Source: Octopus sinensis (Eukaryota). From it: DNA of 64,000 nucleotides. Location of the stretch: the NCBI RefSeq assembly GCF_006345805.1, contig NC_042999.1:96782001-96846000 (forward strand), given 5' to 3'. A program made the translations under genes and the position numbers. The notes under the pieces were generated by a model. That model was not told where the DNA came from. It saw only the letters and a list, made by a program, of their open reading frames with translations, and did not search any database. Of the stretch, positions 13,610 to 61,717 are shown one piece after another (the stretch's first letter is position 1; every line of letters starts with the position of its first letter).

Positions 13610-14200
13610 ACAAGAATTGAATTGAGAGAAACAGATACGATACAGGAAAAGACAGGGTAAAGAATAAAGATAATAAATAAGAATCAAGAGTAAAGAGAGG
13701 AAATACAGAAACGAGGGGCATTCACTCAGGAGGAAAAGAATGAAATGTATGCGAGAAATGGTGGTGGAACGTTACGTATGATGAACGATGAAGCAGAGAA
13801 GAAGGAGGGGGACAGCAGAAGAAGAAATTCTTATCGAGTATCGAGAAGATAAGAAGAGAAAATCAGAAATAAGTAGACATACAATGAATAATGAATTAAA
13901 TGAAGTAAAATAAATATACAAAGTAACATATTTAGAGAAATGAAAGGAAATAGAGACGAGAAGCGACAAAAACAAGAATGGGAGAGGTAAAGCAGAAATA
14001 GTCAAGGTACTACGAAATTGGTAGCAAAACTAACAAAAAGAAAAAGGAAAAATTAGCAAGTTGCCAAGTAAATAAAACACTACGAAAATTATCACAAGAA
14101 GGAAAATGAAAAGTAATAAAACAAAGTATAGGAGTAAAGGCTTTAGAGAGAGACTGAGAAAAAAATCGATGGGAAGGGAAGTGAGTGATGAGAAAGAGAG
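13610..14200 (+). repeat. Purine-rich (GA-rich) low-complexity tract
   Basis: Strong A/G strand bias over ~600 bp with no clean period. Confidence 0.6.
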
Positions 14201-14425
14201 AGAAGTTGCTATCATTTAACTACAGATCAGTTCCGGACCATCATGTCACTGATCAAAAGCATTCCACCTGTAACCTCCTACCTGGAAATACATTATCCAA
14301 GGTATCTTTAATTTCTCAAGATCGAAAGTCCAATTATCATATAATAGGAACTTCCTTGACACAAGCTGCATGCCCCATTTTCAGACTATTTTCCTTAGTC
14401 ATTGCACGGTGATCGCTATAAGTTT

Positions 14426-14790
14426 TAAGTAGCTTGCTAACCAACCACATGGCTCTGGGTTCAGTCCTACTGCGTGGAACCTTGGGTGAGTGTCTTCTAC
14501 TCTAGCTTCGGGCCGACCAAAGCCTTGTAAGTGGATTTGGTAGATGGAAACTGAAAGAAGCCTGTCGTATATATATGTATATGTATGTGTGTGTGTGTGT
14601 CCGTGTTTGTCTCCCCCCACCATCGCTTGACAACTGATGCTGGTGTGTTTACGTCCTCGTAACTTAGCGGGTCGGCAAAAGAGACCGATAGAATAAGTAC
14701 TGGGCTTACAAAAATAAGTCCTGGGGTCGATTTGCTCGACTAAAGGCATGGCCGTAGTCAAATGACTGAAACAAGTAAGAGAATAAAAGA
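14426..14790 (+). mobile_element. tRNA-derived SINE family B (CORE-like CTTGGGYRAGTGTCTT box)
   Basis: GGGTTCAGTCC B-box; central microsatellite; tail CAAATGACTGAAACAAGTAAGAG; further copies at 21.8k, 27.0k and 31.9k. Confidence 0.8.
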
Positions 14791-14818
14791 AAAAAAGAAA
14801 GAATATGTGTGTGTGAGT

Positions 14819-15195
14819 GTGGAAGGCAATGGTCCACTGGTTAGAGCAGCGGACTCGCGGTCTTAGGATCGCGGTTTCGATTCCCAAACTGGGCGTTCTG
14901 AGTGTTTATTGAGCGAAAACACCTAAAGCTCCACGAAGATCCGGCAGAGGTGGGGGTGAACCCTTCTGTACTCTTTCACCACAACTTTTTCCCACTGTTT
15001 TTTCCTGTTTCTGTCGTACCTGTATTTCAATGGGCCAGCCTTGTCACGCTCTATGTCACGCTGAATCTCCCCGAGAACTACATTAAGGGTACACATGTCT
15101 GTGGAGTGGTCAGTCACTTGCACGTTAATTTCACGAGCAAGCTGTTCTGTTGATCGTTTCAGCTGGGACGCTCGTCGTCGTAACCGACGCAGTGC
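14819..15195 (+). mobile_element. tRNA-derived SINE family C
   Basis: Head GTGGAAGGCAATGGTCCACTGGTTAGAGCAGCGGACTCGCGG...GGTTTCGATTCCC; the same head occurs on the minus strand at 26.9k. Confidence 0.8.
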
Positions 15196-15507
15196 TCATA
15201 TATGTATATATATATATATTATATATATATATATATATACGTTTAAATATTTGTTGTGCAAGATTTTTTATGTGAAGTCGTGTGTTGAAACAGATATTGT
15301 TATATTTCGGAATGGTCATTTTGCCAGTTTAGCCAATAAAACACACGCACTATATATTTGGTGTTACTTTGCTTCAGTGTTATTTATTTTTTACATTAAT
15401 CTTAATCTTATTTCGGCCAGAGTTCTTTCGTCACACTCCTGTGACCGCATCAGTGGTCCTTTGTTTTCTTCTTCTTATTTGTGTCTCTCCTTACTAACCG
15501 TCAGCCA

Positions 15508-15549
<42 letters not shown>

Positions 15550-15657
15550 GTGTGTGTGTGTTGTGGTTTGTGTGTGTGTGTGTGTGTGTGTGTATTTGTG
15601 TTGTTGTGTGCATATAATATATATTGCTAAACTGGCAAAATGACCATTCCGAAATTT

Positions 15658-15697
<40 letters not shown>

Positions 15698-16589
15698 TAT
15701 ATATATTATTATATATATAATACACTGTATATATGTATATGTACATATATACATACACATATATATAGTTTGTGTGTGTGTGTGGTGTGGTGCGTGTGTG
15801 TGTTGTGTATGTGTGTGTGTGTGCATATAAATATATATTCAAAAATGACTTCAGGTGGATATACTGATGATAATGCACCGACATTAACACCAAGCTGTAC
15901 ATCTAACAGTGTGCAGTTGATGCAGTTGGAATGCGCATAGGTCCACGAATAACTTTTTAATAAAATGTGGAGAGTCAACGTTCTCCTAATTATTATATAT
16001 ATATAATTATTTTTCCGTTAAGGTAAGATAAACAAAAATGGACTCCATCCAGTGAGAGGTAAATATTGTCTAATTTACACAGTATATAGTTATGAGCTAC
16101 TAACAGTTTGAGATATTTTCCAGGCAGCTTTTAATAACAGGCCTAGTGACACCAAGTAATCTTCAGAAGAAGATAGGCATGTGCTCGGAGCCTGGTGATT
16201 ACTTGGAGACATTGAGTGCGTCATTAAAACCGGCCTATAAGTAACTCCGGTGTATGAAACTATTACTAGCTCATAACTATATACAGTGTGCATTAAGCAA
16301 TATATATATATCACAGACTTCTGATAGTCCCCAGATGATAATAAAAAGACTCAAAAAGTCTGCAACCAAATAACTTTACTCAAAATAACATTTTGCAACT
16401 GATTCAGTGGAGGCAAAGATACCTCACCTTTACTTGACAATTCATGCACCACATTGCAGAAATCACGGTCTAAGTATATCTTAAAGCAAATTCTTACATT
16501 CTTGTACCATTGAATTTCAAATGACGCTCATCTTTTACCCTCGGGTGACTCTACAGCTTCCAAGACTACAATTGTATTCGTCTTTGCTT

Positions 16590-17427
16590 AGGAAAAATTA
16601 CTAAATTGTTGGGGTTAAGCCCCTATTAAATGGTCTTAGTAATCTCCTAAGGAGTTGAAATTTTAGGAATATTACTTCATTTGTGTCTAATATCTATGGT
16701 TAAAATTTCATCAACAGCAAAAATATATGAATTTTCATGGGGGATATGGCCTCATTTATGCCTCCTCATTTTCAAACATATACTGCATTACATCCGCCCT
16801 TTTGCATAGAATATAATTACCAAATTTCATAAAGATCCATTCAGTACTTTTTACCTTGTTTTGGATTATAAAAATGTCTAAAATTTGGGAGTTAGGGGGT
16901 CTTAGAATCCTCATAAAAAGCGGAAACTGGGAATACTTCTTGGTTTATGTCAATAACCAATGGTTGAAATTTAATCAACATCGGAAATTTATGAATTTTC
17001 ATGGGGAGTTTTACCCCCCACCCCTGTAAGCCCCCTTCAAGTTCACACCAAACATACTGCATTATACCCACCCTTATACATTGAATCTAAATTCCAAATA
17101 TTATAAGGATCCATTCAGAAATGTTGGACCATGAAAAATTACTAAAATTTGGAGGATAAGCCCCCATTAGGGGGTCTTAAATTCACCCAAAGAAATAGAA
17201 ATTTGGTGTATATTTCTAATATCTATGGTTCAAATTTCATCAAAATCCAAAGCATTTGAATTTTCAAGCAGGATTCTGCTCCCCTTTATGCCCCCTCAAA
17301 ATTATATGAAACATACGGCATTATCCTTCTCCCTAGGCTTGGATTTTGTGTTCCAAATTCCATTAGGATTGGTCCATAGTTTTCGAGTCTATAATACACG
17401 AACATACAGCATTGACTTTTATATAAT
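16590..17427 (+). mobile_element. Helentron/HINE-like element with three diverged ~265 bp tandem units
   Basis: TGAATTTTCA recurs at ~16728, 16993 and 17258; the CCAAATTTCAT..GATCC motif repeats; HINE-like 3' end TAGTTTTCGAG...ACATACAGCATTGACTTTTATATA. Confidence 0.55.
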
Positions 17428-17443
17428 ATGATATGATATGATA

Positions 17444-17520
<77 letters not shown>

Positions 17521-17580
17521 ATATATATACATAAATGATAGATAGATAGATAGATAGATAAGATAGATAGATAGATAGAT

Positions 17581-17621
<41 letters not shown>

Positions 17622-18459
17622 GGAAATGAGATGAATCTACAGCTCTAGGTATAAACATCCTTGCTGCTGTGGAATCAATTAAAATCGACTCCAGCAAGTT
17701 ATTGGGATATTTTTCATTGAATACAGGAAATGTGAAATGCAATGTTGACTCAGGTGGAACGCGAAGACAATAATTCGAAGCGTTATAATATTCTATTTTA
17801 TTTGTCAACCGTGAAAATGTTCATGAATGGTTCAGCACCGACGTACGAGAAAACAAAGCATCTGATTGGCTCATACTGTTTTAATCTGATCATGGATAGT
17901 AAAGATGACAATTCTAGATATGTTTTTCCCTACTAGATCTTCTCAGCAAAGCATAACATCTTATACTAGATTGGTGATATGACAATCATCGTATAGACCT
18001 ACGATGAATTTCACGCGTAGGCGATAAACTTTATCATAATGACAGAGGAAAATTATAGAGACAAAAAATAACACTCAAGTTAGTGACATCACAAATAATG
18101 TTGTAAGAATAAACATTCATTCAATTAAGATTTTTTAGTAGCTTATTCAGTAAGGCTCAATGATTAATATAAATTTAATCTGATCTTGGAAACTACTAAC
18201 GATAATCCCTAGACATATTTTGGTTAGTTTGAGTTACTGCTCGAAGAACAGTATTTCAGTTTCTGGATAAAAAAAAAAATCGATTGTTATATATTATTTA
18301 TTCATATGTATCTAAGCATGTTTCGCAATTAGTTCCAAAAACTTAGATAGATATATGTGAGCATGCATATACTATATATATATTTATTATATATATATTG
18401 ATTACACACATATATATACATATGTATACAGTTATGTACATGTATGTATACAGACAGAC

Positions 18460-18554
<95 letters not shown>

Positions 18555-19159
18555 TAGACAGATAGATAGGTAGATAGATATACATGAATATACATATACA
18601 TATGTGTGTATACATACCTACATGTGTACATACATACACGCATATATACATGCACAAATATTTGTGTGCATATATATATATGTGTGTGTGTGTTTCGGGA
18701 CGGAGTTTTTTCTTTTTTTCTCTTTTTTTTTTTTTTGCTAAATAAACACATGCACTAGATTTTTTTCCTTCACTCGTTTATTACTGTTCTTATTTTATTA
18801 TTTCAACTTACGTCCATTGTCAGGAAATCTTTCGTCACATTCCTTGCAATACAAATTGACAATCGTATATATCACTATGGAATGGATTAAACTCGGTCTC
18901 AGCATGTTATTGAGTAAATTATTTGAAGAAAATACATCCGTAAAACAAACATCATATGTCTGAAGTTTCCACTATGACCTCTTATCCGTGGATGTTCAAA
19001 GAAACTACACAATAGAATCTACACACTTTTTTTACGTTTTTGCTTTTACGATAAGTTACAACAAGGCTGATTATAATAAAATCTTATAACTCCCACGCAT
19101 TTGGCTGGAGGTGGATAATCGATTCACAATAGCTTCCAATATTAAATTAAATTAAGATA

Positions 19160-19530
19160 TTAAGGTGGCGAGCTGGCAGAATTGTTAGCATGCCGAGCAA
19201 AATGCTTAACGGCATTTCGTCTGTCGTATTTTATCCTGTTTCAAGTTCGATAAAATAATTATCAGTTGAGCACAGGATTCGATATAATCTATTACACTTC
19301 CTCCCGCTAAATTTCAGAACTTTAAGACGGCAAGCTGATAGAATCATTTGCACGCCGGGAGAAAACCTTAGCGGCATTTCGTTCGTCTTTACTTTCTGAG
19401 TTCAAATTCTGCCGAGTTCGACTTTGCCTTTCATCCTTCCGGGGTCGATAAAGTAACTAGTTGTTGAGCACTGGGTAGGCTTGCCCTTCTCTCGAAATTG
19501 CTAGCCTTGTGGCAAGATTTGAAGCAAATA
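19160..19530 (+). mobile_element. Two SINE family A copies (partial head 19160-19225; copy 19323-19530)
   Basis: Family head and GAGTTCAAATTC B-box. Confidence 0.75.
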
Positions 19531-19744
19531 TTAGATTTAATTCCTTCACAAGATATGAACTGAGAGAGTTTGAAGCTTTTTTTTTGCAGGGTATGCTAGA
19601 GTTTGTACATGCACATATCTGCTTACATATTTACATATGCACTACTCACATACGCATATATATATATATATATATATACATAATAAGTGACAAAAAAAGA
19701 ATACCTCGGTATTAGGTAAATAGAAGATACAGTGTATATTTCAC

Positions 19745-20770
19745 TATTTTTAGGGATGATGCTTTCGCTTTAGCTAAGAATACCAATGGACTAGCGCAAG
19801 ATCGGTTAAGGAAGGATATTATCAATCTTATGAAAACATTCGATCTTAGCATAACAATATATACCAACCTGACGGTCGTCAACTTCCTTTGAGTATCTCT
19901 GGATTTACAAAAGTATATTTACAAACCCTATAGAAAGCCCAACGGTAGACTTAATTATATTAATGTAGGTTCCTGCCACCCCCACCCACAGTGCTTAAGA
20001 ATTTAGATAAGAATATTAGTAAGAGAATTTCTAGCCTTTCTTTCCAATATAAACATATTTAATAATGCTGCCCCAATATATAACAAAGCCCTTAAAGCTA
20101 GTGGATTTAAGGAGGAAATATCTTACAGTCCTGCTGTTAGGCCAGAAATACAGAAAAGAAACCATAGACACGGGAAAATTATTTGGTTCACGCCCCCTTA
20201 CTCACTCAAAGTTATCTTTAAGATAGGTAAATAATTGTTGTCACTTATAGATAGACATTTTCCAATGAATCATAAATATATGAAACTCTTTAATAGGCAT
20301 AACCTAAAAATTAGTTTTAGGTCAACCCCAAATTTTAAAAACATAATTACACACAACGCAAAACAACAAAATGAAGCCGGCTGTTCCTGCAGGGATAAAT
20401 ACTTGTGCCTGCCAAATGGAGCCTGTATGACCGAAGCCACTGTAAATTCTACGAACGCTAATAACAGTTTCGTCAAAGAGATATGTGGGTCTCACGGAGA
20501 GAAATTTTAAAGCAAGTTTCAATGATCACACTTTAAGCTTCAGCCACTGGGATAAGCGAAAAACTACTAAATTATCCAGTCATATATGGTTCTTAAAAGA
20601 ACAAGGTGTCAGCAATAGGATTTACTGGAAGATCTTGGCCAACTGTAAACCTTGTACTAACGGTAGTGGCAAGTGCAGTTTTTGTAATAAGGAAAGATGG
20701 CTTATCTGAAAAAATTCCTTGGACCCCGCTACATGTCTAAATTTAAGAACTGAACTTTTTGGCTATGTCC
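19745..20770 (+). pseudogene. Penelope-like element, RT C-terminus plus GIY-YIG endonuclease, degraded
   Basis: FRDD, KPYRKPN, IWFTPPY, CSCRDKYLC..GAC, GLTERNFKASFNDH, TKLSSHIW, KCSFCNKERWLI. Confidence 0.85.
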
Positions 20771-38329: not shown

Positions 38330-39457
38330 TTCGAGGTCACAGACATTCAAACACTCTCTGAATGTTGCCATAACCGTGAGGGAGGGAGGTAAGTAGATAG
38401 GTGCGTACATATAGCAGTGACATCTGACTGATGAATTCTGTCTAATTTGCTGAAGTTTTCATTAGAAGTCAAATTAGGGTGTTTTTTAGGACGATCTTAC
38501 TGTTTGTCTCATTTTCTTTCCCACCTCGTTCACCACCACTGTAACCCTTTGTGTTGTGTTATGTACTCTATCAACAATGAATTGTTTATATTTTTTTTTA
38601 TGACGTTGGAGAAAACGAGGTGATTGAATGTTCACTATCACTATTACTGTTTTCTTCATTGTTCTTTCTTCTTAATGTTCTTCATTCTGCGTAATGTTAT
38701 TGCGATGGTTGTTCTTGTGCTTGTGTGCTTTCTCCACTTGCTTTTGATGTAATTGTGGATGGAATTTTCTTCTTGTTTCTTGTAATTTGTTTCAGTAACG
38801 CTTCTTGTTAAGTCTGTGGGTTTTCCTCTTGGCTTTGTTTTCGTATTTGTTGGTTTACTTCTTTTTTCCTGTATCGGTGGAGGTGGTTTTGGCTGTGGAG
38901 GTAGTAATAGTGGTGTACATGTTAGTGTGGATGTTGCTTCTATTGTCGATGGTGGTGCCGTTTCTGATGTTGTTCATATTGCTTCCGCTGGATTGGGGCT
39001 CACAATGGATGTGGGTATGTAATCTACTAAAAGCGCCAATATTCTGCTAGTAATTCCTTTGAGGTCATTGTCATCAACACTATCTTCAACACTATTGGAA
39101 TTCTTATTGTTATTAATAATGGTGGAATTGGCTGTGCTTCTTTTGGGCAACCATGATGTCGTTGCCACTGTTTAGAGAGTGAAAAGGGAAAGTCGCATTG
39201 TTTTTCCCCTTTATTTTGCTTTACTGAAAGGTCGACTTGGCTTCTCCACCCTCTTGTTTTTTTTTTTTGCTGTTATTTCACGATATCTGTTGCTTCAGTA
39301 AACATAAACGTTTTTGTTAAAATATAAATATTTTCTTTAAATAAATAGTTTTGAAAGTTAGAAAAACGAAATGAAACCGCAAAACGGTCTAAATGGGCCA
39401 AATCTACGACAATTATATTGAATCAACCGGGCGATAAAAAGTTGTAACTCACTCTTG
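38330..39457 (-). pseudogene. 5' end and ORF1 remnant of a Tx1-like LINE abutting (TTC)n
   Basis: Minus ORF MATTSWLPKRS... with a T/P/K-rich linker; EERTMKKTVIV and IEYITQHKG weakly resemble the EKTVIY and VRYVGRG motifs of the 50-kb ORF1. Confidence 0.4.
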
Positions 39458-39580
39458 AAGAAGAAAGAGAAGAAGAAGAAGAAGAAGAAGAAGAAGAAGA
39501 AGAAGAAGAAGAAGAAGAAGAAGAAGAAGAAGAAGAAGAAGAAGAAGAAGAAGAAGAAGAAGAAGAAGAAGAAGAAGAAG
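39458..39580. repeat. (GAA)n, ~40 units
   Basis: Directly visible. Confidence 0.95.
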
Positions 39581-40655
39581 AGATCGGCCAGACTGTTCGT
39601 CACTTCCTCCTAGTTCTTCAACAACTTGAGATATGTACCAAACCAGACCCCTGTCTCTCCGTCCAGCGTCCCACGACGTTATTGGGCAACATGGATCTGC
39701 CTCTCCAGATGTTGGACTACAGGCCAACTGACTTTCCTTGGTTAATTTTTGCTCCTAATACCGTCTCGTATTCTTTTAGAGCAGTGCCGATCAGATTTGT
39801 GTGCCTGTTGTTCGACATTATGAAGGGTGACATTGTCTGCATATGCTTACACGGTTCTCCTACTCTCTAGTTCGTTCAGGATGCCTAAGAATGCTTCACG
39901 TTTCTGCAGAAGAAGCTCCCGAACTCCGATAAATAATCATTCCCTTCAACAACCACCGAACAGATGTCGCTGTACATTGCGGCAATCTATTTACGAGCAA
40001 CGTAACTGAAACTAGCCACTGTGAAAACGGCCACCAAAGTATTGGTGATCGGCTCTATCGAAAGCTTTTCATTGGCTCAAATTGATCAGAGACCCACCCA
40101 TGCCAGCTTCTTTACCCACCCTGCATGAGGGGAAGATTGTCGTCGATAGAACTGCGCATCGTCAATGAGTTCTTCGACGGCCAGCGCCATCTCTTCGCCA
40201 ACACCTTGGCCAAAACTTTGATATTTGCGTTCAGCAGCGTTATGGGCCTAAACTTTTCTATTTCATCTCCCTTGTTTTGGTCCTTTCTTAGCAGTGCCGC
40301 CGCTCTGAAACTCACAGAACTAGGAATTCTCCCTTCTGTTGCTACTTGCGGTAGATATCTGCTAAGAGGCTGACAAACAAGTCTGGGATATAAGTTAAAG
40401 CTCGTAGGGCAGACCATCCTAACCAGGCGATTTGCCCTCCATGCAGCCCATCGTCGCACCTCATATTTCCGTGGCTATTAGCAGCATTTCGCAACGCTCT
40501 ACTCTCTTGCTGAGAGTTGTGGCATGCTGTTGAGGTAGGCATTGGAGTCTATCCTGCATTCCGATCTGTCATTCGTCCCACAGTTAAGTAAAATGCCGCT
40601 GAAATAACGCACACATCTGCTCGAGCTCGAGTACTATGCGCCCATTTTGGCCAAC
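39581..40655 (-). pseudogene. Degraded Tx1-like ORF2 (RT) fragment
   Basis: KGDEIEKFRPITLLNANIKVLAKVLAKR, closely similar to KGDNISNYRPITLLNVELKILAKVLAER in the intact element. Confidence 0.8.
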
Positions 40656-47768: not shown

Positions 47769-47795
47769 ACACACACATATATATATATTTATATA

Positions 47796-48691
47796 TAGGG
47801 TGCTTCAAAATATTTGATATCATTTGAGATATAAATATTACAGAAACTACATAGTCAAAGCAAATGAAACTAAACAGGCTTAATGTTTAGCAACATAAGA
47901 TTTTTCCTCCTAATTTGAATGAGAAATTCAAAGGTTTGTGGATTCCATGAACGATTTCACAAAAACGAGCCATGTAGATACTTATTGGAGACGGCGCACA
48001 ACACATTCACTTTTATTGAGTCCTTCTCATGCACAGCTGTGGCATTTGGATTTTCTTCGCCTCAAATGCGAACATTATGCTTATTGACTTTGCCTTTCGT
48101 ATGAAATATGACCTCAACACTGAAAACAAAACGTTCCTTGAACTCGGCTTCTTCAACTTTCTCTTGCATAACAACACAGAATTGTTTGCGCCTTCGCTTG
48201 TTATCTGCTGTTATGGCCTGAACGAGCTGCAATATGTAGGGTTTCATTAGCAAGCGTTTCTTCATGGCGCGCCATATTGTCGTTGGCGGAATCTGGGCTT
48301 CCAGACGTGTTCTTCTTATGGACTTCCTGGCGCTTCGCAAGAGTTTTGAGTGAACCCGCTCAACCATCTTTTCCGACGTCAGTGGTCACCCAGATCCTTT
48401 TGCCCTGCACAGACAGCCTTCCTCTTTGAACTTTGTGTGCTATTTCCATATCTACATTGCCGTTGGTGATGTTTTAGACAACTGTCTCACAAATGTACGC
48501 TGCACAGTCTTGTTCGGCTGTGTTCAAGTATATTCCAACACAGTGAATGCCTGAAAAGATAAACATATTAAACATTAAACATAAAATTTTGACCTGCTTC
48601 TACACATCCTGTTAAAATTTGAAGTCATTTGAACAAAAACTGGCAAAGTTATTAGATCGCGAAATGATATCAAATTTTTTGAAACACCCTG
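47796..48691 (-). mobile_element. Internally deleted Tc1/mariner-superfamily transposon
   Basis: ~31 bp TIRs (T/C)AGGGTG(C/T)TTCAAAA(T/A)ATTTGATATCATTT; minus transposase remnant RKSIRR...KPYILQLVQ...FVFSVEVIFHTKGKVNKHNVRI. Confidence 0.85.
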
Positions 48692-48858: not shown

Positions 48859-48907
48859 ATATATATATGTATACATATATACGTATATGTATGTGTATAT
48901 ATATATA

Positions 48908-49276
48908 TAATAGAAATATTAAAATTACTAAGTCTCTCTAAAAGAGAACAGCGGCAGCGTTCCCGGAAAATAATAGTTATCGCCATACTAATATGGCATT
49001 CTTATAAAGATAAGAATAAAACCATCGAACAGAGATTGTCAGAAGCGACACCTACTGGCTGGCTACGCTGCATTGAAAAGGGGCAATACCCCGAAACGCG
49101 TCTGTAGCTGCCGGTCAAGTAGTGTGGAGCGACTGACCTCCCTTGTTCGAAGGTTATATGGATAGTGTTTGTGTATCAAATAGCTAACTTAAGGCGATGG
49201 CCTCATGGAGCTAGTAAGCGGTCAGCTTTATTCTTATTTTTATAAGAATGCCATATTAGTATGGCGATAACTATTA
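48908..49276 (+). mobile_element. HHR-bearing retrozyme/Penelope-like terminal unit with inverted 5' segment, inside (TA)n
   Basis: 48971-49020 is inverted relative to 49227-49276; 48908-48951 is inverted relative to 49798-49841; intact HHR in the middle. Confidence 0.8.
49052..49122 (+). ncRNA. Type I hammerhead ribozyme, U3:A8 core variant (copy 1)
   Basis: GCUGCA-UUGAAAA-GGGG-CAAUA-CCCC-GAAAC-GC-GUC-UGUAGC; stem I extended by GGCUGGC/GCCGGUC and CUACU/AGUAG; predicted cleavage after 49102. Confidence 0.88.
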
Positions 49277-49277
49277 T

Positions 49278-49337
<60 letters not shown>

Positions 49338-49416
49338 ATATTATGTATATACTTATAGATATATAGACAGACAGACAGACAGACAGATAGACAGGCAGAT
49401 AGACAGACAGACAGAC

Positions 49417-49452
<36 letters not shown>

Positions 49453-49473
49453 GATAGATAGATAGATAGATAG

Positions 49474-49555
<82 letters not shown>

Positions 49556-49740
49556 TGTTTCTTTATTAGCCACACAGGGCTGCACACAGATAGAACAAAT
49601 TACAAGGTAGAGCTTTTCTTTTGAAGGTTTAAAAAAAAAAAAAAAAAGGAAAGGGGGAGTTTCGATCAAAAGGGATCGTAAAAGGAGAGAAAGAGGACAA
49701 AAAAGGGGGGGGTTAAAAAAGGGGGGAGAGGTAAAATTTA
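49556..49740 (-). mobile_element. 3'-terminal fragment of Tx1-like family b adjoining (GATA)n
   Basis: Near-identical to 55701-55875, the 3' UTR end of the minus-strand zf-RVT-coding element. Confidence 0.8.
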
Positions 49741-50138
49741 ACCCTGCCCTCCATCTACCCCCAAACATTTTGAAGATAAAAGAAGAAAAAAAAGAAACTG
49801 TTCTCTTTTAGAGAGACTTAGTAATTTTAATATTTCTATTATTGAAAACAAGTGGATGTATTCCACCGAAACTAGATAAATAAAACCATCGAACAGAGAT
49901 TGTCAGAAGCGACACCTACTGATTTTTCCTTGGATTACGTCGGATTATTTTACGCTGTAAGCTGTTATGTTAGTTCGTTCTGTTCTGGATTTATACGTAC
50001 AATTTTTGGAGTATTAACTTGTGAAACAAAGTAATTTTCGCCCTTCGGGGTAGAAAATTTCTTTTTATATATGAACTTTAATTCAGTGTGGAAGTAATTT
50101 TTATCTTGTCTCTTGTGACAAGTCACTTGCATTTTAAT

Positions 50139-51245
50139 ATGGATCTTGACTTAACGTCAAATTCTGATTTTCCCGAGATGGGAGAAGTTATAAAGCAAAA
50201 GGATACAAAGGAGAAACAAAGTTTTTCGGAAGCCGTTGGAGGCAATGTTATAGAACTGGAAGTAGCAATGGGGGATCTCTTCAAGTTCAGAAAGTTCATA
50301 CAAAGGAATGGAGAAGAAACGAGAATAATACCGCCCCCTGACTCCTTACAAGCAATCCGTGAGAAGACGGTAATTTATAAGGTATATAATATTAAGGAAA
50401 AAAAGATTGCAGATGTAAAAAATGAATTGGTAGAACGGTGCATGGCACCAATTTGGAACAAGGTTCGCTATGTTGGCCGAGGAGTGAGAAGCGCTACTAT
50501 TGAAGCCCATTTCGAGTCGGCTAGCATAGCGAAGGAAATTTCAACTCAAACGTTGAAGAGTGCAGACATCTTGTTGCTGCCCACGTACTTAGGGCGCAGA
50601 ACAGCTAAGGTAACAATAGAGGATATACCAACAGGTTACGATGTAATGTGGGCAGCAACAGCGGTCGTATTCGACGTAGAAGAGAAATTAAACATTTTAA
50701 ACATGAGGATGAAAGAGGCAAAATTTTGGAAAGGTCAGCAGCTTGAAATGATCGTTCAAGCTGACAATGCAACGCTGGAGAGTTTGCCAGACAGGGTCTT
50801 CGTGGGGGATGGACACACTATGCGGGTATCGGTGGAGGGACGTAGCCCCAGATGTTTCAAATGTGGGCAGAAGGGTCACGTCCGCTCAGAGTGCAAAAAG
50901 AAAAAACCCGTTATTGCCCCCATTCAAACCGCTGTGGAGAACAAAGCAGACATCACAGCAACAACAAAAGAGAATACCCGGAAAAAGCAAAATGAAAGTC
51001 AAAAGGAGGAAAAGAAAATGAATGGAAAACAAAACGAAAACGAAAACGAGGTGGAAAATAATTTATCAAATGGAAAAGAACTGGAAGTAATGGAATATAC
51101 GACTGTAACCAACAAAAAGAAGAAATCCAATACCCCGGACTCCCCACCCCAAACAAAAAGAAAAACAAACGCAGAAGAACAACACAAAAAGAATTATCCA
51201 ATCCCACCCCGCTGGCACTACTTTTGTAGGCCAGCATTTCATTAA
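50139..51245 (+). CDS. Tx1 ORF1p, gag-like nucleic-acid-binding protein with zinc knuckle
   Basis: First ATG at 50139; CFKCGQKGHVRSEC (CX2CX4HX4C); K/E-rich tail; C-terminus probably frameshifted. Confidence 0.85.
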   Translation: MDLDLTSNSDFPEMGEVIKQKDTKEKQSFSEAVGGNVIELEVAMGDLFKFRKFIQRNGEETRIIPPPDSLQAIREKTVIYKVYNIKEKKIADVKNELVERCMAPIWNKVRYVGRGVRSATIEAHFESASIAKEISTQTLKSADILLLPTYLGRRTAKVTIEDIPTGYDVMWAATAVVFDVEEKLNILNMRMKEAKFWKGQQLEMIVQADNATLESLPDRVFVGDGHTMRVSVEGRSPRCFKCGQKGHVRSECKKKKPVIAPIQTAVENKADITATTKENTRKKQNESQKEEKKMNGKQNENENEVENNLSNGKELEVMEYTTVTNKKKKSNTPDSPPQTKRKTNAEEQHKKNYPIPPRWHYFCRPAFH

Positions 51246-51324
51246 ACCCCAGCCCCCAACTTTAAAAGGATTCAAAAAAAACCGATAGGTGCATTGCTTA
51301 TAACACAAAAAACGAGAGAGTAGT

Positions 51325-51621
51325 TTGGTACATAAAGGCGAAACCAAACATAAAATGTTTCAAATCATCGGAAAAATCCCGGATTGGAGGTATGCGAAGG
51401 TTGGAGAGGAGGAATGGAAGGAGAGACTCTTCCAACTACACGTGAGGGACAACCTGATTAAAGATGTCACACAAGAGGTGATAGCTGGAAAATTGAATAT
51501 TAGCCCGGCAGCCACTCCATCCCAGAGCCCGGTGGCAACGCCGGTTAAATGCCCAGCAACAACGGAGAGTGTGGGGGAGGCAGGCAGACAAAAGCTGCCA
51601 TGCTCCCTCTCACAACCGTAA
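51325..51621 (+). pseudogene. Probable out-of-frame continuation of ORF1
   Basis: Open frame ending just before the ORF2 ATG; no motif recognised. Confidence 0.4.
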
Positions 51622-51645
51622 GTAACAAACTTTCTTCATTCATCG

Positions 51646-52968
51646 ATGATTAAGTTGGGCTGTATAAATGTGCGTGGAATGGGGTCGAAATGGAAACAGG
51701 CTTGCTTGCTGGACGACCTCAAGACACACAGAATAGATGTAGCCATTGTCACCGAGTCCAAGATGAGAGGAACCCAAGCGTTCTCGCATCTTCTCAATGG
51801 TTACGAGAAATTTATTTCTCCTAGCCGAGGAGGGAGTGCAGGCGTGGCAGTCCTTATCAGGAAGAACTTGGACTTACAGGTAAGTACTGTCTTTATGGAC
51901 CCAGAAGGTAGGCTGGTTGTCCTCGATGTAACTCACATGAGTAAGCAGTCCTTCAGGTTGGTAGCTGTTTATGCTCCTAATGAGGGTAGGCAGACTGGTT
52001 TTTATCGGAACTTGGAGCACTTTCTAGTGACGTCTAAATCGGTAGAATTGGTAGGGGATTTCAACACTATCATCGATGCGCGGATAGATAGTGTGGGCTC
52101 GTCTGATAGAAGGGGGAATCCTTGCCTCAAGGGACTACTGACGAGCTTTAATCTAGTAGATCGGTTTCGAATGGATGAGCCGAGCATTCCACAGTGGACG
52201 TGGAGTAACAATGACGGCTCACGCAGATCGTATATAGATAGGGTATTTGTTAAAGAACGAGATAGGAATAGCATTAGCTGTCCACAATTTTGTATTGTGC
52301 CTTACACGGATCACAAATTAGTGACGTGTGAGGTACATGTAGATAAATGCCATAGACAGGGACCCGGATACTGGAAAATGAACAAGTCTATTTTGTCTTG
52401 TGAAGCTTTCCGAAAACGGATTATGGAATTAGTCCAGAGGGCATTATGTGGAACCATCATTAATAATAGATGGTGGATCGCCCTCAAGAGAGCCATCCGT
52501 TTGGAGTCCATTAGATTTAGCAACCAGCTAAGTTTAGATAGGACTAGAATAGAGGGCGATTTAGTTAAGAACTTAGACGAGGCAATGGGATCTGGCTGTG
52601 CATCTAGAGTGTTAGCAGAGAGAACGATCTTGTACCGTCACCTCAATGCCAAGCATGAAGGATGTAGAGTCAGAGCTAAGCTACGTGCAGTGAAACGAGA
52701 AGGTATTAATGTTGCCGGATGGGCACGTCGTGTGGAGAGTCAGAAGGGCAAAAAGTCCTCTATTAAGTCTTTAACTGACGAACAGGGACGCAAAATCTAT
52801 GGACAGGAGGAGATACAGAAGGTCTTTCAACAGCATTTCGCTCGGTTGTTTGGGGAGGGCGATCCACTAGAGCGAGGGGAGGACTTACAGAACTTCCTAG
52901 CTGGTGGGCCTCGGCTCTCGCCAAGCAGAGCGGAACGCTGGAAGGACCGATTACTCCCGCGGAGGTAA
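51646..52968 (+). CDS. Tx1 ORF2p N-terminal part: apurinic-like endonuclease
   Basis: MIKLGCINVRG, VTES, VAVYAPN, LVGDFN, SYIDRV, TDHKLV, GYWKMN; -1 frameshift at ~52940. Confidence 0.9.
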   Translation: MIKLGCINVRGMGSKWKQACLLDDLKTHRIDVAIVTESKMRGTQAFSHLLNGYEKFISPSRGGSAGVAVLIRKNLDLQVSTVFMDPEGRLVVLDVTHMSKQSFRLVAVYAPNEGRQTGFYRNLEHFLVTSKSVELVGDFNTIIDARIDSVGSSDRRGNPCLKGLLTSFNLVDRFRMDEPSIPQWTWSNNDGSRRSYIDRVFVKERDRNSISCPQFCIVPYTDHKLVTCEVHVDKCHRQGPGYWKMNKSILSCEAFRKRIMELVQRALCGTIINNRWWIALKRAIRLESIRFSNQLSLDRTRIEGDLVKNLDEAMGSGCASRVLAERTILYRHLNAKHEGCRVRAKLRAVKREGINVAGWARRVESQKGKKSSIKSLTDEQGRKIYGQEEIQKVFQQHFARLFGEGDPLERGEDLQNFLAGGPRLSPSRAERWKDRLLPRR

Positions 52969-52976
52969 GAGGGGTT

Positions 52977-55043
52977 TTGGCTGAATGCGCCCGGGAAAAG
53001 TCGCCGGGACTGGATGGTCTGCCCTATGAGTTTTATTGTTGTATGCCGGACTTGTTCGGAGACATACTGGCAAGCGTCTACGCAAATTGGCAACAGAATG
53101 GGAGGATTCCCAGTTCTGTGAGCCGGGGAGTTGTGACGCTGATCCAGAAAAACCCGAGCAAGGGGGATAATATTAGTAATTATAGGCCCATAACTCTACT
53201 TAATGTAGAGTTAAAGATTTTGGCCAAGGTGTTAGCAGAAAGGTTGAAGGTCGTCATGGAAAAACTTGTCGGAAAGGCACAGACATGTGCAATCCCAGGC
53301 AGGTCGATCGAAGATAATCTTCACCTTCTACGCTACACTATAGACAGGGTTGGGCAATTAGCCGGCAAAGGAGGGGCATTGGTCCATTTAGACCAAAGTA
53401 AAGCATTTGATAGGGTAGATCATCAGTACCTGGCGACGGTTCTCGAAGCGGCTGGGCTAGGCCCTGACTTTCGCGGGTGGATATCAGCTATGTACAGCGG
53501 TATCAAGTCCACAGTCCAGATAAACGGTTACTTAACGGAACCGTTTTCGATTAAGCGTTCAGTTCGTCAAGGATGTCCCTTGTCCCCTCTCCTGTACGTT
53601 TTGGCTCTTGAGCCATTGCTGTGGGAGTTGGAGACGGTGAGATGCAATCCTAATGAAATCGGATGCGGTAAGTCTGTTTCTGCGTATGCGGATGACGTCA
53701 CCTTCATCGTGTCCAACGAAGCACAACTAACTCGTGTAGAAGGTGCTCTCCGAAGATACGAAGCGGTGGCTGGGGCAAAAGTTAACAAGGACAAGTCCAC
53801 TGGTTTGCGCCTCGGCACCTGGAGGAACAAGCCGATATCGTCCAGTGTTGTTGGACACTGGACAGATGGTCCTGTTAAATTGCTTGGAGTTTGGTTTGGT
53901 TCAGACTCCCAGACGGAGAAAAATTGGAGCGAGGTAGTGACCAAGGTAGAAGCCATAGTTCGGGAGTGGTCCGGAAGGCATCTTTCCTTGAAAGGGAGGG
54001 CGGAGGTGGCACAGGTGTTTATAGCATCTGTAATCACCTATCGCCTGACTGTCGTGCCTTGCCCCGATTTGTGGCTAAGCAAGTTGGATCGACTCCTTTT
54101 CCGCTTTTTGTGGAAGGGAGGAAAGCCACTTGTAAGACGCTCCGTGTGTTGCCAGGAACCACTAAAGGGTGGGCTGGGGATGCCTTGGTTAATGATGCGC
54201 AGGCATGCGCTGAGACTGAGACATCTCTGGTTTCACCTGGAAGGTGATAAGGTGTGGAGTCCGCTGGCAGATAATTTCTTCCCGCAACCGGACTCTATGG
54301 AGAGATTTAAACCCGGTTTCATTAAAAGACGGAACCTGACTCTATGGCAGAAAGAGTGCCGACAGGCACTCTGGCTGATCCACAAGATAGGCAAAGCCGG
54401 CTGCGGGAATACCACCTCGACATTTTATAGAAGGATGGTAGAGGCAAAAAATGACGACGTCCTAAGAGGGGCTCTGGGGTTCGATGAGGATCAACTATCC
54501 GACCTGTTTAAGAAGACTTTCAAGCCGGGGTATTTGAACAATTACCAAAAATCCCTGACTTGGCAGTGCTATAGGAACGCTCTACCTGTTCGCGATAAGT
54601 TATATAGGCATGGAATGTCAGTGCCACCGACATGTCCAAGATGTGGGTTGGACGATGAAACCGTCCAGCACGCTTTTGTACATTGTCAGGAGCTGTCAGG
54701 CTTAATAAGTTACGTAGAACACGTGTTGTCGCATCTGGGACGAGTACAGCTATCGGCTGGTTCTATAATAAAGATGATACCGCCAGCTGGACTCTCAAAG
54801 GAAGGTGAGGCTTGTTTTCACTGTACGGTGGCAGTACTGAAAGAGTGTGTGTGGAGAACTAGATTGGAAGGTTTGGTGTCAGGAACCTTTGTCTCTGGAT
54901 ATGGTATGTTAAAATACTTCAGAGACCATCTAAAGAGCAAGATGGATTTAGAGAAGAGGAACCTGACACAGAAAAAGTATGTGAATCGATGGAAGGATGT
55001 GATAAAAAAGGTGGGTGTGAGTAACCCTGCTTGGTCATCATGA
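52977..55043 (+). CDS. Tx1 ORF2p C-terminal part: reverse transcriptase and zf-RVT
   Basis: KSPGLDG, YRPITLLN, DQSKAFD, RQGCPLSP, YADD, KLLGVWF, CPRCGLDDETVQHAFVHC. Confidence 0.92.
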   Translation: MAECAREKSPGLDGLPYEFYCCMPDLFGDILASVYANWQQNGRIPSSVSRGVVTLIQKNPSKGDNISNYRPITLLNVELKILAKVLAERLKVVMEKLVGKAQTCAIPGRSIEDNLHLLRYTIDRVGQLAGKGGALVHLDQSKAFDRVDHQYLATVLEAAGLGPDFRGWISAMYSGIKSTVQINGYLTEPFSIKRSVRQGCPLSPLLYVLALEPLLWELETVRCNPNEIGCGKSVSAYADDVTFIVSNEAQLTRVEGALRRYEAVAGAKVNKDKSTGLRLGTWRNKPISSSVVGHWTDGPVKLLGVWFGSDSQTEKNWSEVVTKVEAIVREWSGRHLSLKGRAEVAQVFIASVITYRLTVVPCPDLWLSKLDRLLFRFLWKGGKPLVRRSVCCQEPLKGGLGMPWLMMRRHALRLRHLWFHLEGDKVWSPLADNFFPQPDSMERFKPGFIKRRNLTLWQKECRQALWLIHKIGKAGCGNTTSTFYRRMVEAKNDDVLRGALGFDEDQLSDLFKKTFKPGYLNNYQKSLTWQCYRNALPVRDKLYRHGMSVPPTCPRCGLDDETVQHAFVHCQELSGLISYVEHVLSHLGRVQLSAGSIIKMIPPAGLSKEGEACFHCTVAVLKECVWRTRLEGLVSGTFVSGYGMLKYFRDHLKSKMDLEKRNLTQKKYVNRWKDVIKKVGVSNPAWSS

Positions 55044-55290
55044 AGGGAGAAAATAGTCTCTGGGCTCTTAGGCTGTCGGGTAAGAATCCTGACTGTGATA
55101 TACCTAGCTGGCCAAAATCATTTTTAATTTTTAAAAAAAAAGGAGAAAGTAAAGTCTAGTATCATAATCAATAATCAACATATGTAAATATCAAACGAAC
55201 AACGTAAACTTTTTGTAATTATGTTTTGTACTGTAATGTACTATCTCTGTAAGATTTTTATAATCATAATAAAGATTTTAGAAGCGACAC

Positions 55291-55361
55291 CTACTGGCTG
55301 GCTACGCTGCATTGAAAAGGGGCAATACCCCGAAACGCGTCTGTAGCTGCCGGTCAAGTAG
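55291..55361 (+). ncRNA. Type I hammerhead ribozyme, U3:A8 variant (copy 2), immediately 3' of the LINE
   Basis: Identical to copy 1 at an offset of 6239 bp; predicted cleavage after 55341. Confidence 0.88.
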
Positions 55362-55522
55362 TGTGGAGCGACTGACCTCCCTTGTTCGAAGGTTATATGG
55401 ATACAGTTTGTGTATCAAATAGCTAACTTAAGGCGATGGCCTCATGGAGCTAGTAAGCGGTCAGCTTTATTCTTATTTTTATAAGAATGCCATATTAGTA
55501 TGGCGTTAACTATTATATATAT

Positions 55523-55555
<33 letters not shown>

Positions 55556-55631
55556 TTATGTATATACTTATAGATATATAGACAGACAGACAGACAGACA
55601 GATAGACAGGCAGATAGACAGACAGACAGAC

Positions 55632-55700
<69 letters not shown>

Positions 55701-55702
55701 TG

Positions 55703-56862
55703 TTTCTATTAGCCACACAGGGCTGCACACAGATAGAACAAATTACAAGGTAGAGCTTTTCTTTTGAAGGTTTAAAAAAAAAAAAAAAAAAGAAGGGGGG
55801 AGTTTCGATCAAAGGGATCGTAAAAGGAGAGAAAGAGGACAAAAAAGGGGGTTTAAAAAAAGGGGGGAGAGGAAAAAAATTGATCAATAGGGATCGTTAT
55901 CACAGAAATGTCAATATGAAGTGTAAAGGGGAGGACAGGTGACGTTTACCCGTGGAAAGAAAAGCCTACGGAAAAGACCACGGTAACCTCGGTCAATGAA
56001 ATCACATTTTATATTTCTTTTTTTTTTTTTTGCAAATAAGCAAATCTCTGTTTTCAATTTCTGGGTTCATAGGACTATGCTCAAGGTGGCTTCGTCATTC
56101 ATACGTGCCATTCTTGCTACATTCACCCATCTTTTTTTAAAACATTCGCTAGACAAAACTTGCCTCTCTACTCTCACTTTCCTTTTCAAGTGGTACTTGA
56201 AGAAGTTGATGAGAGATTGACCAGAGAGGAAAGTGTTTGTCTCCAATCCTTTCAGACGCGTCCACCAGATACATTCTTTCGCCATAGCCACAAGGATGAT
56301 GAAAATAGCTCTTCCTTCCCGTTTGAAGGAAGGAGGTGTGACAATATTGACGATAGACTCAGCTGATAAACCGACTCGTCCCACACTTGACAGCAGTTGT
56401 TCGACATAAGCCCACAGGTCGGAAATTGTTGGACACTGAACGAGTGCGTGCAGAACGGTTTCGTCGCTCTGACCGCATCTCGGGCAGGTCGGCCCCGTGT
56501 TTCTCGAGCCGTGTCTGTAGAGCTTATCCCGAACGGGTAGCGCTTCTCGGTAGCACTGCCAGGCCAGGGATCTCTGGAAGTTGTCCATGGGCCCTGGCCC
56601 GAAAGTCGTCCTGAACAGGCGGGTCAGGTACTCCTCGTCGACGTCCAGGTTCGCCCCGAGCTCGTCGTCGTACCTCCCCTCCACTAAACCCCTATAGAAT
56701 GCTTTGGTTGTGTTGAAGTCACTTAAGGTCGACCCAGGACGGCAGAGTTGCTTGAGAGCAACGCGACACTCGTGGTGCCATTCGCCCTTCCTCGGCCTCT
56801 TTTTGATCCACGACTGCAGTTCGGTCATGGAGACGAGCTGCGGGAAAGCGTGCCTCACAAAC
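55703..56862 (-). mobile_element. 5'-truncated Tx1-like LINE (family b) inserted in (GATA)n
   Basis: Minus ORF ending at 56067 with WQCYREALPVRDKLYRH..CPRCGQSDETVLHALVQC; (GATA)n at ~55630-55700 and 56863-56930. Confidence 0.9.
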
Positions 56863-56931
<69 letters not shown>

Positions 56932-59930: not shown

Positions 59931-60074
59931 TGCATACATACATACATACATACATACATGCATACATACATACATATATGTACATGCATATATATATAAA
60001 TATAAATACATACATATACATACATGCAAATACATATATATATATATATATATATACTATTCTGTATTTTATTG

Positions 60075-60302
60075 TTACCACGTTTCGGCTGATGTACTCT
60101 CCAGCCTTCATCAGGTGTTCTGGTGGAATTTCGAACCCAGCTCTTTCTTTGACTCATGGGGTACTCTGTTCTCATTCCAAAGCTATACTTTTTTTGCTGG
60201 TGTTATTTATTTGTTGACATCATTTCCAAAGCCCTTGCCTGGGATTGAACTCAGAATCCGAGGGTCAGTAACCCGCGCTCTTAGCCACTATGATATATGC
60301 CC
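60075..60302 (-). mobile_element. tRNA-headed element ending in a hammerhead motif (SINE-like or Penelope-like terminal repeat)
   Basis: Minus: TAGTGGCTAAGAGCGCGGG..GAGTTCAATCCC head, then AACAC-CTGATGA-AGGCTG..CAGCC-GAAAC-GT. Confidence 0.72.
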
Positions 60303-60439
60303 ATAGGTACTTATAGAGTTAATTTGGGGGCTTAAAAAACTTAATATTTTATCTTTTCTTAATACCGATTCCCATATTACATTCATATCTGCACTTGGTT
60401 AGCTTAGGAGGTTATTGTATCTTAGTATGTGTGCTGCCT

Positions 60440-61310
60440 CTTTAGGATAAACACCACTAAAGCCAACCCTATGGCTTCGATATGTTGATGACAACTTTAT
60501 ACTCTGGCCCCACCAGTTGGATGTTCAAGTACTGCTAGATCATGTGAACTCAATAAAACCATCCATAGAGTTCACAATGGGAAAAGAAGAAGACAATCAG
60601 CTGCCATTCCTGGATGTATTAATAACACGCACTGAGTATGGGTTCAGGGCATCCGTATACTGCAAGTCAACCTTCACTGGACAATACCTCAACTTCAATT
60701 CCCACCATCTATACAGTAGAAAGGGAGGGAATACTCAGTGCTTAAAACATCGAGCAAAGACTATAAGCAGCGATCCTGATACACACCACGAAGAAATGAT
60801 CAGACTAAGAAACAATCTATTATGCAACAACTACCGAGAAAATATATTATCCATTCCAATTAGGAAGAGGAGAGAGTATGATGCCCATAAACTGAGCACA
60901 GTCTATCTTCCGTATGTCAAAGGCCTCTCGGAAAAGATACAAAAGATGTGCGGTCCATATGACACCAGGACAGTATTCAGAAGTAATACAACTCTTTGCA
61001 AATATCTTCTCCGATTAAAACTATCCCTAGAAGATGATATGACCAAACACTGCATGTACTTCATCCCATGCAGTTGCGATAAGTTATACAAAGGCGAAAC
61101 GTGCCGTGCCCTTAAAATAAGAGTAGAGGAACATCGTAAAGCTGTGATACAAGGGGATATTGAAAAATCTGGTATAGCCGATCATGTATGGGCAAACGGA
61201 GACCACTTCCCCTTGTGGGATGAAGTTAAAATTATAAACAAAGAACACTGCAGGAAAATACGAAAATTAAGAGGTAGCAGATATGCTAGGACACAATAAT
61301 CTTCTAAGCA
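60440..61310 (+). pseudogene. Penelope-like element 3' part: RT C-terminus plus GIY-YIG endonuclease
   Basis: WLRYVDD (60481), IEFTM..E..LPFLDVLI, VY.KSTFTGQYLNFNSHH, LYKGETCRALKIRVEEH, SGIADHVW. Confidence 0.88.
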
Positions 61311-61394
61311 GAACTAGTGCAGATATGAACGTAATATCAGAACCGGTATTAAGAAAATATAAAATATTAGGTTTATAAACACCAAAATTCACTC

Positions 61395-61598
61395 CATAAT
61401 TGCCTACGAGCATATAGCGTAGATTCTGAGTTCAGTCATAGACAGGGACTTGGGGAATGATATCAACAAAAAATAACAACAGCAAAAAAAGAATACTTTA
61501 GGAATGAGAACAGAGTACCCCGTTAGTCAAAGGAAGGGTTGGGTTCGAAATGCCACCAGAATACCTGATGAAGGCTGGAGAGTACATCAGCCGAAACG
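61395..61598 (+). repeat. Penelope-like terminal repeat with truncated hammerhead, homologous to 60075-60302
   Basis: GAATGAGAACAGAGTACCCC...CCACCAGAATACCTGATGAAGGCTGGAGAGTACATCAGCCGAAACG. Confidence 0.75.
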
Positions 61599-61717
61599 CA
61601 GTACGCAGTTGAAGCTATAGTCCTTTATGTATAAGAAATAAACCAACAGCAGTACTCAGTAGAAGCGGCTGTTCGAGAAAACAGACATTACATACAGCCA
61701 AATTTCATATAGATACT

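Follow-up and report, generated by a model that had tools for sequence, protein, structure and literature searches.

The locus and the insertion junction

The stretch of DNA analyzed here (the window) comprises 64,000 nucleotides of AT-rich eukaryotic DNA from Octopus sinensis (NCBI RefSeq assembly GCF_006345805.1, contig NC_042999.1, positions 96,782,001 to 96,846,000 of the forward strand), and its feature of interest is a long interspersed nuclear element (LINE) that lies inside a small element bearing a hammerhead ribozyme motif (Table 1). A perfect 17-bp target-site duplication (TSD), AGAAGCGACACCTACTG, borders the LINE at 49905-49921 and 55280-55296, and the same 17-mer stands uninterrupted at 49041-49057, in an unoccupied copy of the host element (copy A) that represents the empty site. 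When the two flanks of the insertion are joined with a single copy of the TSD, the product differs from 48990-49290 by 3 substitutions only. The LINE terminus, ...ATCATAATAAAGATTTT, runs directly into the TSD with no poly(A) tail, and a conserved terminus abutting a TSD recurs at two other Octopus loci, one from O. sinensis (L042) and one from O. bimaculoides (L043), hence at three loci out of three. A preceding sequence-only reading of this DNA had described both the LINE with its duplication and the missing poly(A) tail; the former proves correct to the base, and the latter stands as well.

The same reading had pointed to a target preserved 860 bp upstream. An uninterrupted 17-mer does lie there, but it belongs to a segmental duplicate and is no independent copy of the element. 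Copy A occupies 49008-49736 and copy B, which received the LINE, occupies 49874-49921 together with 55280-55877; both hold the element, (AT)n and (GACA/GATA)n tracts and 182 bp from the 3' untranslated region (UTR) of a second LINE (LINE-X), and it is the presence of this LINE-X piece in both places that identifies the two copies as segmental duplicates, the product of a local duplication of ~730 bp. Between them lies a 137-bp linker (49737-49873) whose inverted 45-bp copy (49798-49842) of 48907-48951 indicates that the rearrangement was complex. The LINE entered the right-hand copy after the local duplication. The upstream empty site, a paralogue born of that duplication, proves that the insertion was precise; it does not prove that the target is multicopy. 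Two other readings of the junction were set aside: copy A cannot be one arm of a very long TSD, as the sequence at the 5' end of the LINE matches it for 48 bp only, and a microhomology of AGATT between the LINE end AGATTTT and the pre-nick target AGATTGTC was too weak and was not used.

Table 1. Positions of the LINE, its host element and adjoining features in the window (position 1 is the first letter of the window)
Feature	Position	Strand	Remarks
Leader, 60 bp	48910-48969	+	Between (TA)n and the element; possibly a 'tail' of the Penelope-like element type
Inverted 51-bp copy of the element 3' end	48970-49020	-	98% to 49227-49277; resembles a terminal inverted repeat
Hammerhead-bearing element, copy A, uninterrupted	49021-49277	+	257-bp body, (TA)n flanks
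Type-I hammerhead core, copy A	49064-49109	+	C17 at 49102
LINE-X 3'-UTR piece, duplicated, 182 bp	49555-49736	-	94.5% to 55700-55877
5' stub of element copy B	49874-49921	+	Corresponds to 49008-49057; ends in the 5' TSD, without ribozyme
LINE, L1/Tx1-type (Tx1 placement likely)	49922-55279	+	5,358 bp, full-length, without poly(A) tail
LINE 5' UTR	49922-50138	+	217 nt; first bases ATTTTTCCTTGG common to the O. sinensis L042 copy
LINE open reading frame (ORF) 1	50139-51621	+	CCHC zinc knuckle; open over 50139-51245, C-terminal third in another frame to 51621
LINE ORF2	51646-55043	+	Apurinic/apyrimidinic (AP)-type endonuclease (from 51646), reverse transcriptase, zf-RVT
LINE 3' UTR	55044-55279	+	236 nt; terminus conserved at the window, L042 and L043
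3' TSD copy	55280-55296	+	Perfect repeat of 49905-49921
3' part of element copy B, hammerhead regenerated (55303-55348)	55280-55517	+	C17 at 55341
LINE-X, 5'-truncated relative	55701-56864	-	46% amino acid identity, C-terminus of reverse transcriptase; context, outside the insertion

Anatomy, coding state and affiliation of the LINE

The copies of the LINE share conserved ends, namely ATTTTTCCTYGG at the 5' side and, at the 3' side, TGTAATGTA...ATCATAATAAAGA followed by 4-5 A/T; all three loci have kept an AATAAA signal (55268-55273 in the window) at a distance of 6 nt from the end of the LINE. Pfam recognizes zf-CCHC, Exo_endo_phos (PF03372), RVT_1 (PF00078) and zf-RVT (PF13966) in the ORFs, the zinc knuckle of ORF1 being matched by PF00098 at residues 238-254. 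Human L1 ORF2p is the best match among solved structures for both halves of ORF2, and the reverse transcriptase (RT) half scores 2e-42 against human L1 ORF2p and 2e-22 against R2. By the order of AP endonuclease and RT, and by this match, the LINE is assigned to the L1 superfamily. Its closest protein relatives are cephalopod (Argonauta hians, O. sinensis and O. bimaculoides), and the active LINEs of O. vulgaris include a sole L1-superfamily class, labelled L1-Tx1, of ~5.4 kb per insertion (PMC13282606).

Each ORF of the window copy carries one frameshift: that of ORF1 falls at ~51115-51190, judged against the ORF1 protein of the L042 copy, and that of ORF2 is a 1-nt deletion between 52940 and 52941, judged against the L042 and L043 copies. 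By this comparison the copy is dead, albeit full-length in extent, so that the "full-length Tx1 LINE" of the sequence-only reading holds for its extent (49922-55279) but not for coding competence. As an observation in its own right, the 5' UTR contains a hairpin, AATTTTCGCCC-TTCG-GGGTAGAAAATT, found at 50033-50059 in the window, ~9878-9905 in L042, and ~9897-9925 and 15540-15570 in L043; it is kept in 4/4 LINE copies, including the diverged second LINE (LINE2) of the latter locus, with some two-sided changes in the stem.

The hammerhead motif in the target

The target motif follows the order that defines a type-I hammerhead, that is, helix I, core, helix II, GAAA, helix III and H17, with helix I open. 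Its proximal part is composed of a UAC bulge opposite a single U and a 6-bp helix I (GCUGCA/UGUAGC), beyond which a long distal helix I extends; the remainder consists of a 7-nt core, UUGAAAA, a helix II of GGGG/CCCC closed by the loop CAAUA, the GAAA stretch, and a helix III reduced to AC/GU with a 2-nt loop, ACGCGU being palindromic and C17 coming next. The Schistosoma ribozyme likewise has a UAC bulge opposite a single U. A helix III as short as this implies dependence on a dimer, and both the architecture, canonical for metazoan type-I hammerheads, and its dimer dependence have been described by Cervera and de la Pena (PMC4209133).

A strict descriptor (helix I of at least 6 bp, helix II of at least 4 bp, no more than 2 core mismatches) matches the window at 49066-49108 and 55305-55347 only, against an expectation of 0.02 matches per window from 100 dinucleotide shuffles. 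The second match lies just downstream of the LINE: the 5' strand of distal helix I is part of the TSD, and the hammerhead hairpin is thereby complete again 59-62 nt downstream of the LINE, with the predicted cleavage site, C17 at 55341, 62 nt past the LINE end in the window. The fold of this post-LINE hammerhead is as stable as the original (z = -4.07), which agrees with the regenerated ribozyme proposed by the sequence-only reading. A relaxed descriptor also matched 5779-5826, a chance match within coding sequence, and scans for the ribozyme core in bacterial and archaeal genomes and viral contigs returned no match.

The core departs from the invariant CUGANGA at positions 3 and 8, which form a pair with each other, reading UUGAAAA in the window and UUGAUAA and UUGACGA in the O. 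sinensis locus L042, so that the 3-8 pair in the three Octopus versions is U-A, U-A and U.G, respectively. A natural U3-A8 covariant core, with ~1,300 matches in Schistosoma, is known from Penelope-like elements (PMC4209133). The two L042 versions read UAC CGCCCG UUGACGA GGGA...UCCC GAAA C-UG-G U U CGAGCG U and UAC CACACG UUGAUAA UAGG...CCUU GAAA C-CUAG-G U C CGUGUG U, and in the alignment of all three sequences 94.9% of cells pair, with compensatory (two-sided) changes in 6/13 pairs; in a control in which the partners were slid by 1-3 columns, pairing fell to 27-51% and compensatory pairs to 0-1. On the strength of this covariation, the target motif is a genuine, conserved structure of the hammerhead type whose self-cleavage is predicted.

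The host element and other features of the window

The element that carries the hammerhead differs in its makeup between loci. In the window it is a single unit (257-bp body) plus the inverted 51-bp end. In L042, the element interrupted by a LINE has a 13-bp TSD of its own and a 5' part that is inverted, its 356-bp repeat amounting to ~1.3 units, and a further, uninterrupted element at 39363-39965 holds 1.7 tandem units of ~356 bp within (TA)n (39300-40016), with the core UUGAUAA and a helix III loop of CUAG. The existence of this second element shows that hammerhead elements are multicopy in Octopus. Insertions of Penelope-like elements show a preference for (TA)n and an inverted, 5'-truncated copy (PMC8557442), and both traits are found here: (TA)n borders the element at either end in the window and at L042 39300-40016, and inverted terminal copies occur in the window and in the LINE-bearing element of L042. 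Animal non-LTR retrozymes (LTR, long terminal repeat) consist of AT-rich units of ~300-400 bp with type-I hammerheads (PMC7229834), and a preprint argues that they descend from Penelope-like elements (bioRxiv 10.64898/2026.07.22.740005). From these features the host element looks Penelope-mobilized, be it a non-LTR retrozyme or a non-autonomous element derived from Penelope.

A fragment of a Penelope-like element is inserted beside (TA)n at 60060-61640. Its + strand encodes, at ~60400-61300, the C-terminus of an RT together with a GIY-YIG endonuclease, and 61350-61640 is mirrored at 60060-60350 by an inverted, 5'-truncated copy. Both arms contain CTGATGAAGGCTGGAGAGTACATCAGCCGAAAC, at 60082-60114 (-) and 61565-61597 (+), a motif that Rfam does not detect and that may represent a Penelope-type hammerhead of minimal form. 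A mariner-like remnant (47790-48690) with terminal inverted repeats GGGTGCTTCAAAATATTTGATATCATTT / AAATGATATCAAATTTTTTGAAACACCC immediately precedes the (TA)n tract next to the leader, and fragments of unrelated LINE reverse transcriptases are found at 4524-5159 (+), 5560-6040 (+) and 39589-40445 (-).

Other copies of the lineage and their targets

The two additional loci were reached through ORF1 homology alone, by way of two annotated Octopus proteins. Their LINEs are 83-86% identical in nucleotides to that of the window over nearly the full length (83% for L042), while outside the LINEs there is no blastn homology among the three loci and the neighboring genes differ; bodies so alike in flanks so unlike, amid different gene neighbors, indicate independent, non-orthologous insertions. 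The LINE of L042 (9747-15273) ends in ...ATCATAATAAAGAAAAT and has a 17-bp TSD, TTCATCGCTACCTGGTG. Its insertion point is the 5' strand of distal helix I in a hammerhead element whose divergence places it beyond detection by blastn, and the hammerhead follows directly 3' of the LINE in the same orientation, its position 17 being 59 nt downstream. In L043, the first LINE (9783-15396) ends in ...ATCATAATAAAAATTTT and is flanked by (T)TCAAACAGCTGGTCG, a 15-16-bp TSD resembling that of L042; here two LINEs of related lineage, the second more diverged, are arranged head to tail over 9783-20290 with a 15-bp target duplication alone between them, which is the stacking to be expected when the duplication regenerates the target.

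The likeness of the sites extends to the uninterrupted element of L042, whose AGAAGCGATGCCTAC matches the window TSD (AGAAGCGACACCTAC...) at 13/15 positions. Taken together, the three non-orthologous loci hold four insertions with TSDs of 15-17 bp at one shared site, in a small sample in which the L043 target is partly visible. By rough count, 4-5 hammerhead elements, of which two are duplicates from a single locus, occur in the ~128 kb of Octopus DNA examined, corresponding to ~1-2% of it, and at such a density a chance match at the same ~10-nt position is very unlikely. The comparison of these sequences supports a LINE family that targets a ribozyme retroelement, with n=3 loci. The sequence-only reading, which had proposed a Tx1 family with this kind of target and had named unrelated flanks at other copies as the sign of a one-off insertion, was not refuted at L042 and L043: its ribozyme-element target is supported by L042, in the same helix-I strand, and by the L043 flank, which looks homologous, again over three loci.

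Searches elsewhere yielded more distant relatives. With the RT and endonuclease halves as protein queries, no relative exceeded 60% and 53% identity, respectively; scans with the RT C-terminus in bacterial and archaeal genomes and viral contigs gave no match, and an exact-match metagenome scan with the last 20 nt of the LINE gave 34 matches of 20-29 bp, all of them chance AT-rich sequence. Among the more distant relatives (L001, L002, L037, L039, L040 and L041, Argonauta among them) none lies within a hammerhead element. Distant clade members, too, are without poly(A) and are associated with targets. The 3' end of LINE-X, ...GTGTGGCTAATAGAAACAT, adjoins (TATC)n and its truncated 5' end adjoins (GATA)n, which suggests a microsatellite-targeting sister family; the relative L037, 57% identical, ends in GTGGCCAATAAAAGAAATC followed by (ATT)n. 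A 44%-identical relative at ~690-7285 of L040, an ENA metagenome contig, has a 22-bp TSD, ACACCTGTGAACTGCGTGTCTT; a TATA-like box closely precedes it and Ty3-type gag/pol genes follow it, so that it apparently sits within the LTR of a Ty3-type element. Target association of this kind in the Tx1 clade has been summarized by Kojima 2015 (PMC4494074).

Discussion

We consider, with a probability of roughly 0.75, that the window LINE is one copy of an Octopus lineage that integrates site-specifically in hammerhead repeats, whether retrozymes or Penelope-derived elements, and that it belongs to the L1 superfamily, most likely to L1-Tx1. Integration would proceed by target-primed reverse transcription. 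The bottom strand would be nicked first, the position being the 5' base of the helix-I hairpin (window sequence, ...TTGTC^AGAAG); the nick in the top strand would fall 15-17 bp deeper into the hairpin (17 bp in the window, ...CTACTG^GCTGG). The site would be recognized by the endonuclease or the ORF2 protein, possibly aided by pairing of the RNA with the target. The upstream stub, devoid of the ribozyme, keeps the target sequence and can receive a further insertion, as in the tandem array of L043.

Several observations weigh against this interpretation. The sample consists of three loci only, and the window had been selected beforehand for the very feature under study. In L043, the ribozyme half of the target and the far junction of LINE2 are lost in an assembly gap (CM046605.1, L043 20290-20388), and its 5' flank resembles the O. 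sinensis elements weakly, at a level reached by 9-11 of 500 shuffles. The nick position relative to the UAC bulge differs by 4 nt between the window and L042, and no conserved sequence marks the bottom-strand nick. The hairpin of the L042 target, whose hammerhead has a C.A mismatch in helix I, folds no better than shuffled sequences (z = 0.14). What the sequences show is membership of the L1 superfamily together with Tx1-like behavior, and placement of the LINE in the Tx1 clade is likely. Furthermore, the Rfam hammerhead models gave no match at gathering score over the whole window, nor at E<=10 in slices of 421 nt and 121 nt; they were equally blind, in a control slice, to the CUGAUGA...GAAAC motif of the Penelope-like element at 61565-61597, and in view of this second miss the negative carries little weight. 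The hammerhead of the sequence-only reading thus comes out with its type-I architecture upheld and covariation added, but with a core that is UUGAAAA and not CUGANGA, and with a negative Rfam result.

Whether the ribozyme itself matters to the LINE is a separate matter, on which two accounts compete. In the first, to which we give slightly less than an even chance, the LINE is target-specific and the ribozyme plays no role: the LINE would recognize the DNA sequence or a hairpin-prone structure, and its 3' end would be made by cleavage and polyadenylation at the AAUAAA, a few nt into the flank. The conservation of this signal so close to the LINE end at all three loci speaks in favor of this account, as does the finding that sister families target microsatellites or an LTR, where there is no ribozyme. 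It also draws on the quality of the ribozymes: hammerhead motifs with a short helix III cleave weakly as monomers (PMC4209133, PMC7229834), and those considered here combine a U3-A8 or U3.G8 core with a 2-bp helix III and would be expected to be poor monomer cleavers, the L042 target having in addition the mismatch and the unremarkable fold energy given above. What this account leaves to be explained is that the poly(A) tail is absent from every copy, and that the orientation is the same and the ribozyme regenerated at both loci where this is visible, with spacings of 59 and 62 nt.

In the second account, which takes up the self-cleaved RNA 3' end proposed by the sequence-only reading and which we put forward tentatively and regard as rather doubtful, the LINE would exploit the ribozyme of its target. 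The regenerated hammerhead would cleave read-through RNA at 59-62 nt beyond the LINE end. The 3' tail so produced, free of poly(A), would be complementary to the next element's nicked bottom strand and would position reverse transcription at the last base of the LINE. This idea is consistent with the lack of poly(A), with the unchanging orientation and with the spacing of 59-62 nt. The conserved AAUAAA competes with a 3' end made by the ribozyme, and the idea must also contend with the weak monomer activity expected of motifs whose helix III is so short.

Readings that dispense with target specificity fare worse. That the window holds a one-off nested insertion of a LINE without target preference, the likeness of the other two loci being coincidental, is improbable. 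Nested insertions are indeed common in this repeat-rich window, and the window copy was flagged for its flanks; yet L042, picked without regard to flanks, has its LINE in the same helix-I strand with a 17-bp TSD, the coincidence would have to occur within elements as sparse as estimated above, and L043 carries two LINEs stacked at one site. Less probable still is that LINE and ribozyme element were copied as a composite unit from a single ancestral insertion, by segmental duplication or co-mobilization, for although the target element is segmentally duplicated within the window, the duplicated copy A has no LINE, the LINE bodies are 83-86% identical in flanking elements that lie beyond the reach of blastn and have different TSD sequences, and the host element of L042 is bounded by its own 13-bp TSD whereas that of the window is bounded by (TA)n.

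Targeted DNA insertion has natural models in sequence-specific LINEs, which also serve as points of departure for it, and few of their targets are known. Homing to hammerhead retrozymes would add a new class of target, at a locus that joins a LINE, Penelope-like elements and retrozymes. Such a locus is a natural setting for the question of whether the 3' end of a LINE RNA can be made with a borrowed self-cleaving ribozyme. Were the ribozyme indeed exploited, no earlier LINE would be known to rely on the ribozyme of another retroelement for both 3' end formation and targeting. The locus also illustrates the presence in cephalopods of canonical type-I hammerheads that have a U3-A8 core and escape standard Rfam scans; the literature searched on animal retrozymes and on hammerheads of Penelope-like elements yielded no cephalopod example.

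The closest parallels are found among the target-specific LINEs of the Tx1 clade, several of which insert into other transposons: Tx1L targets the piggyBac-type Tx1D in Xenopus, Tx1-Mar targets Mariner-N4_AMi, Tx1-9_AMi a Harbinger element, and Tx1-8_Crp and Tx1-4_AMi LTR retrotransposons, while Keno targets U2 small nuclear RNA genes and Kibi and Koshi the microsatellites (TC)n and (TTC)n (PMC4494074). Like these, the window LINE is an L1-superfamily element with an AP endonuclease, found at one position of a multicopy sequence, without poly(A) and with sister families on microsatellites. It departs from those listed in that its target is a hammerhead retroelement and its TSD rebuilds a motif of the self-cleaving type immediately beyond the 3' end of the LINE. 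Insertion of LINEs into other transposons is already known, and it is the class of target that is new relative to the literature searched, in which (coverage being incomplete) we found no report of a LINE targeting hammerhead elements.

The target, in turn, resembles the hammerheads of animal retrozymes and Penelope-like elements in its type-I fold, 6-bp helix I, 4-bp helix II, tiny palindromic helix III and AT-rich sequence, and it shares with those elements the (TA)n sites and the inverted truncated copy. Partial tandems of ~356-bp units occur in L042, whereas the element of the window differs from tandem retrozymes in being a single unit with an inverted 51-bp end. A final comparison is with R2, a LINE that is likewise site-specific and that has a self-cleaving ribozyme and co-transcribed target sequence linked to its transcript, an association that would hold for the window LINE as well. 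The ribozyme of R2 is, however, encoded by the LINE, located at the 5' end, of the hepatitis delta virus (HDV)-like type and of demonstrated function, whereas that of the window is the hammerhead of the target, lies at the 3' side and would be used by the LINE only if the second account above holds; moreover, R2 relies on a restriction-like endonuclease, and the window LINE on one of the AP type.

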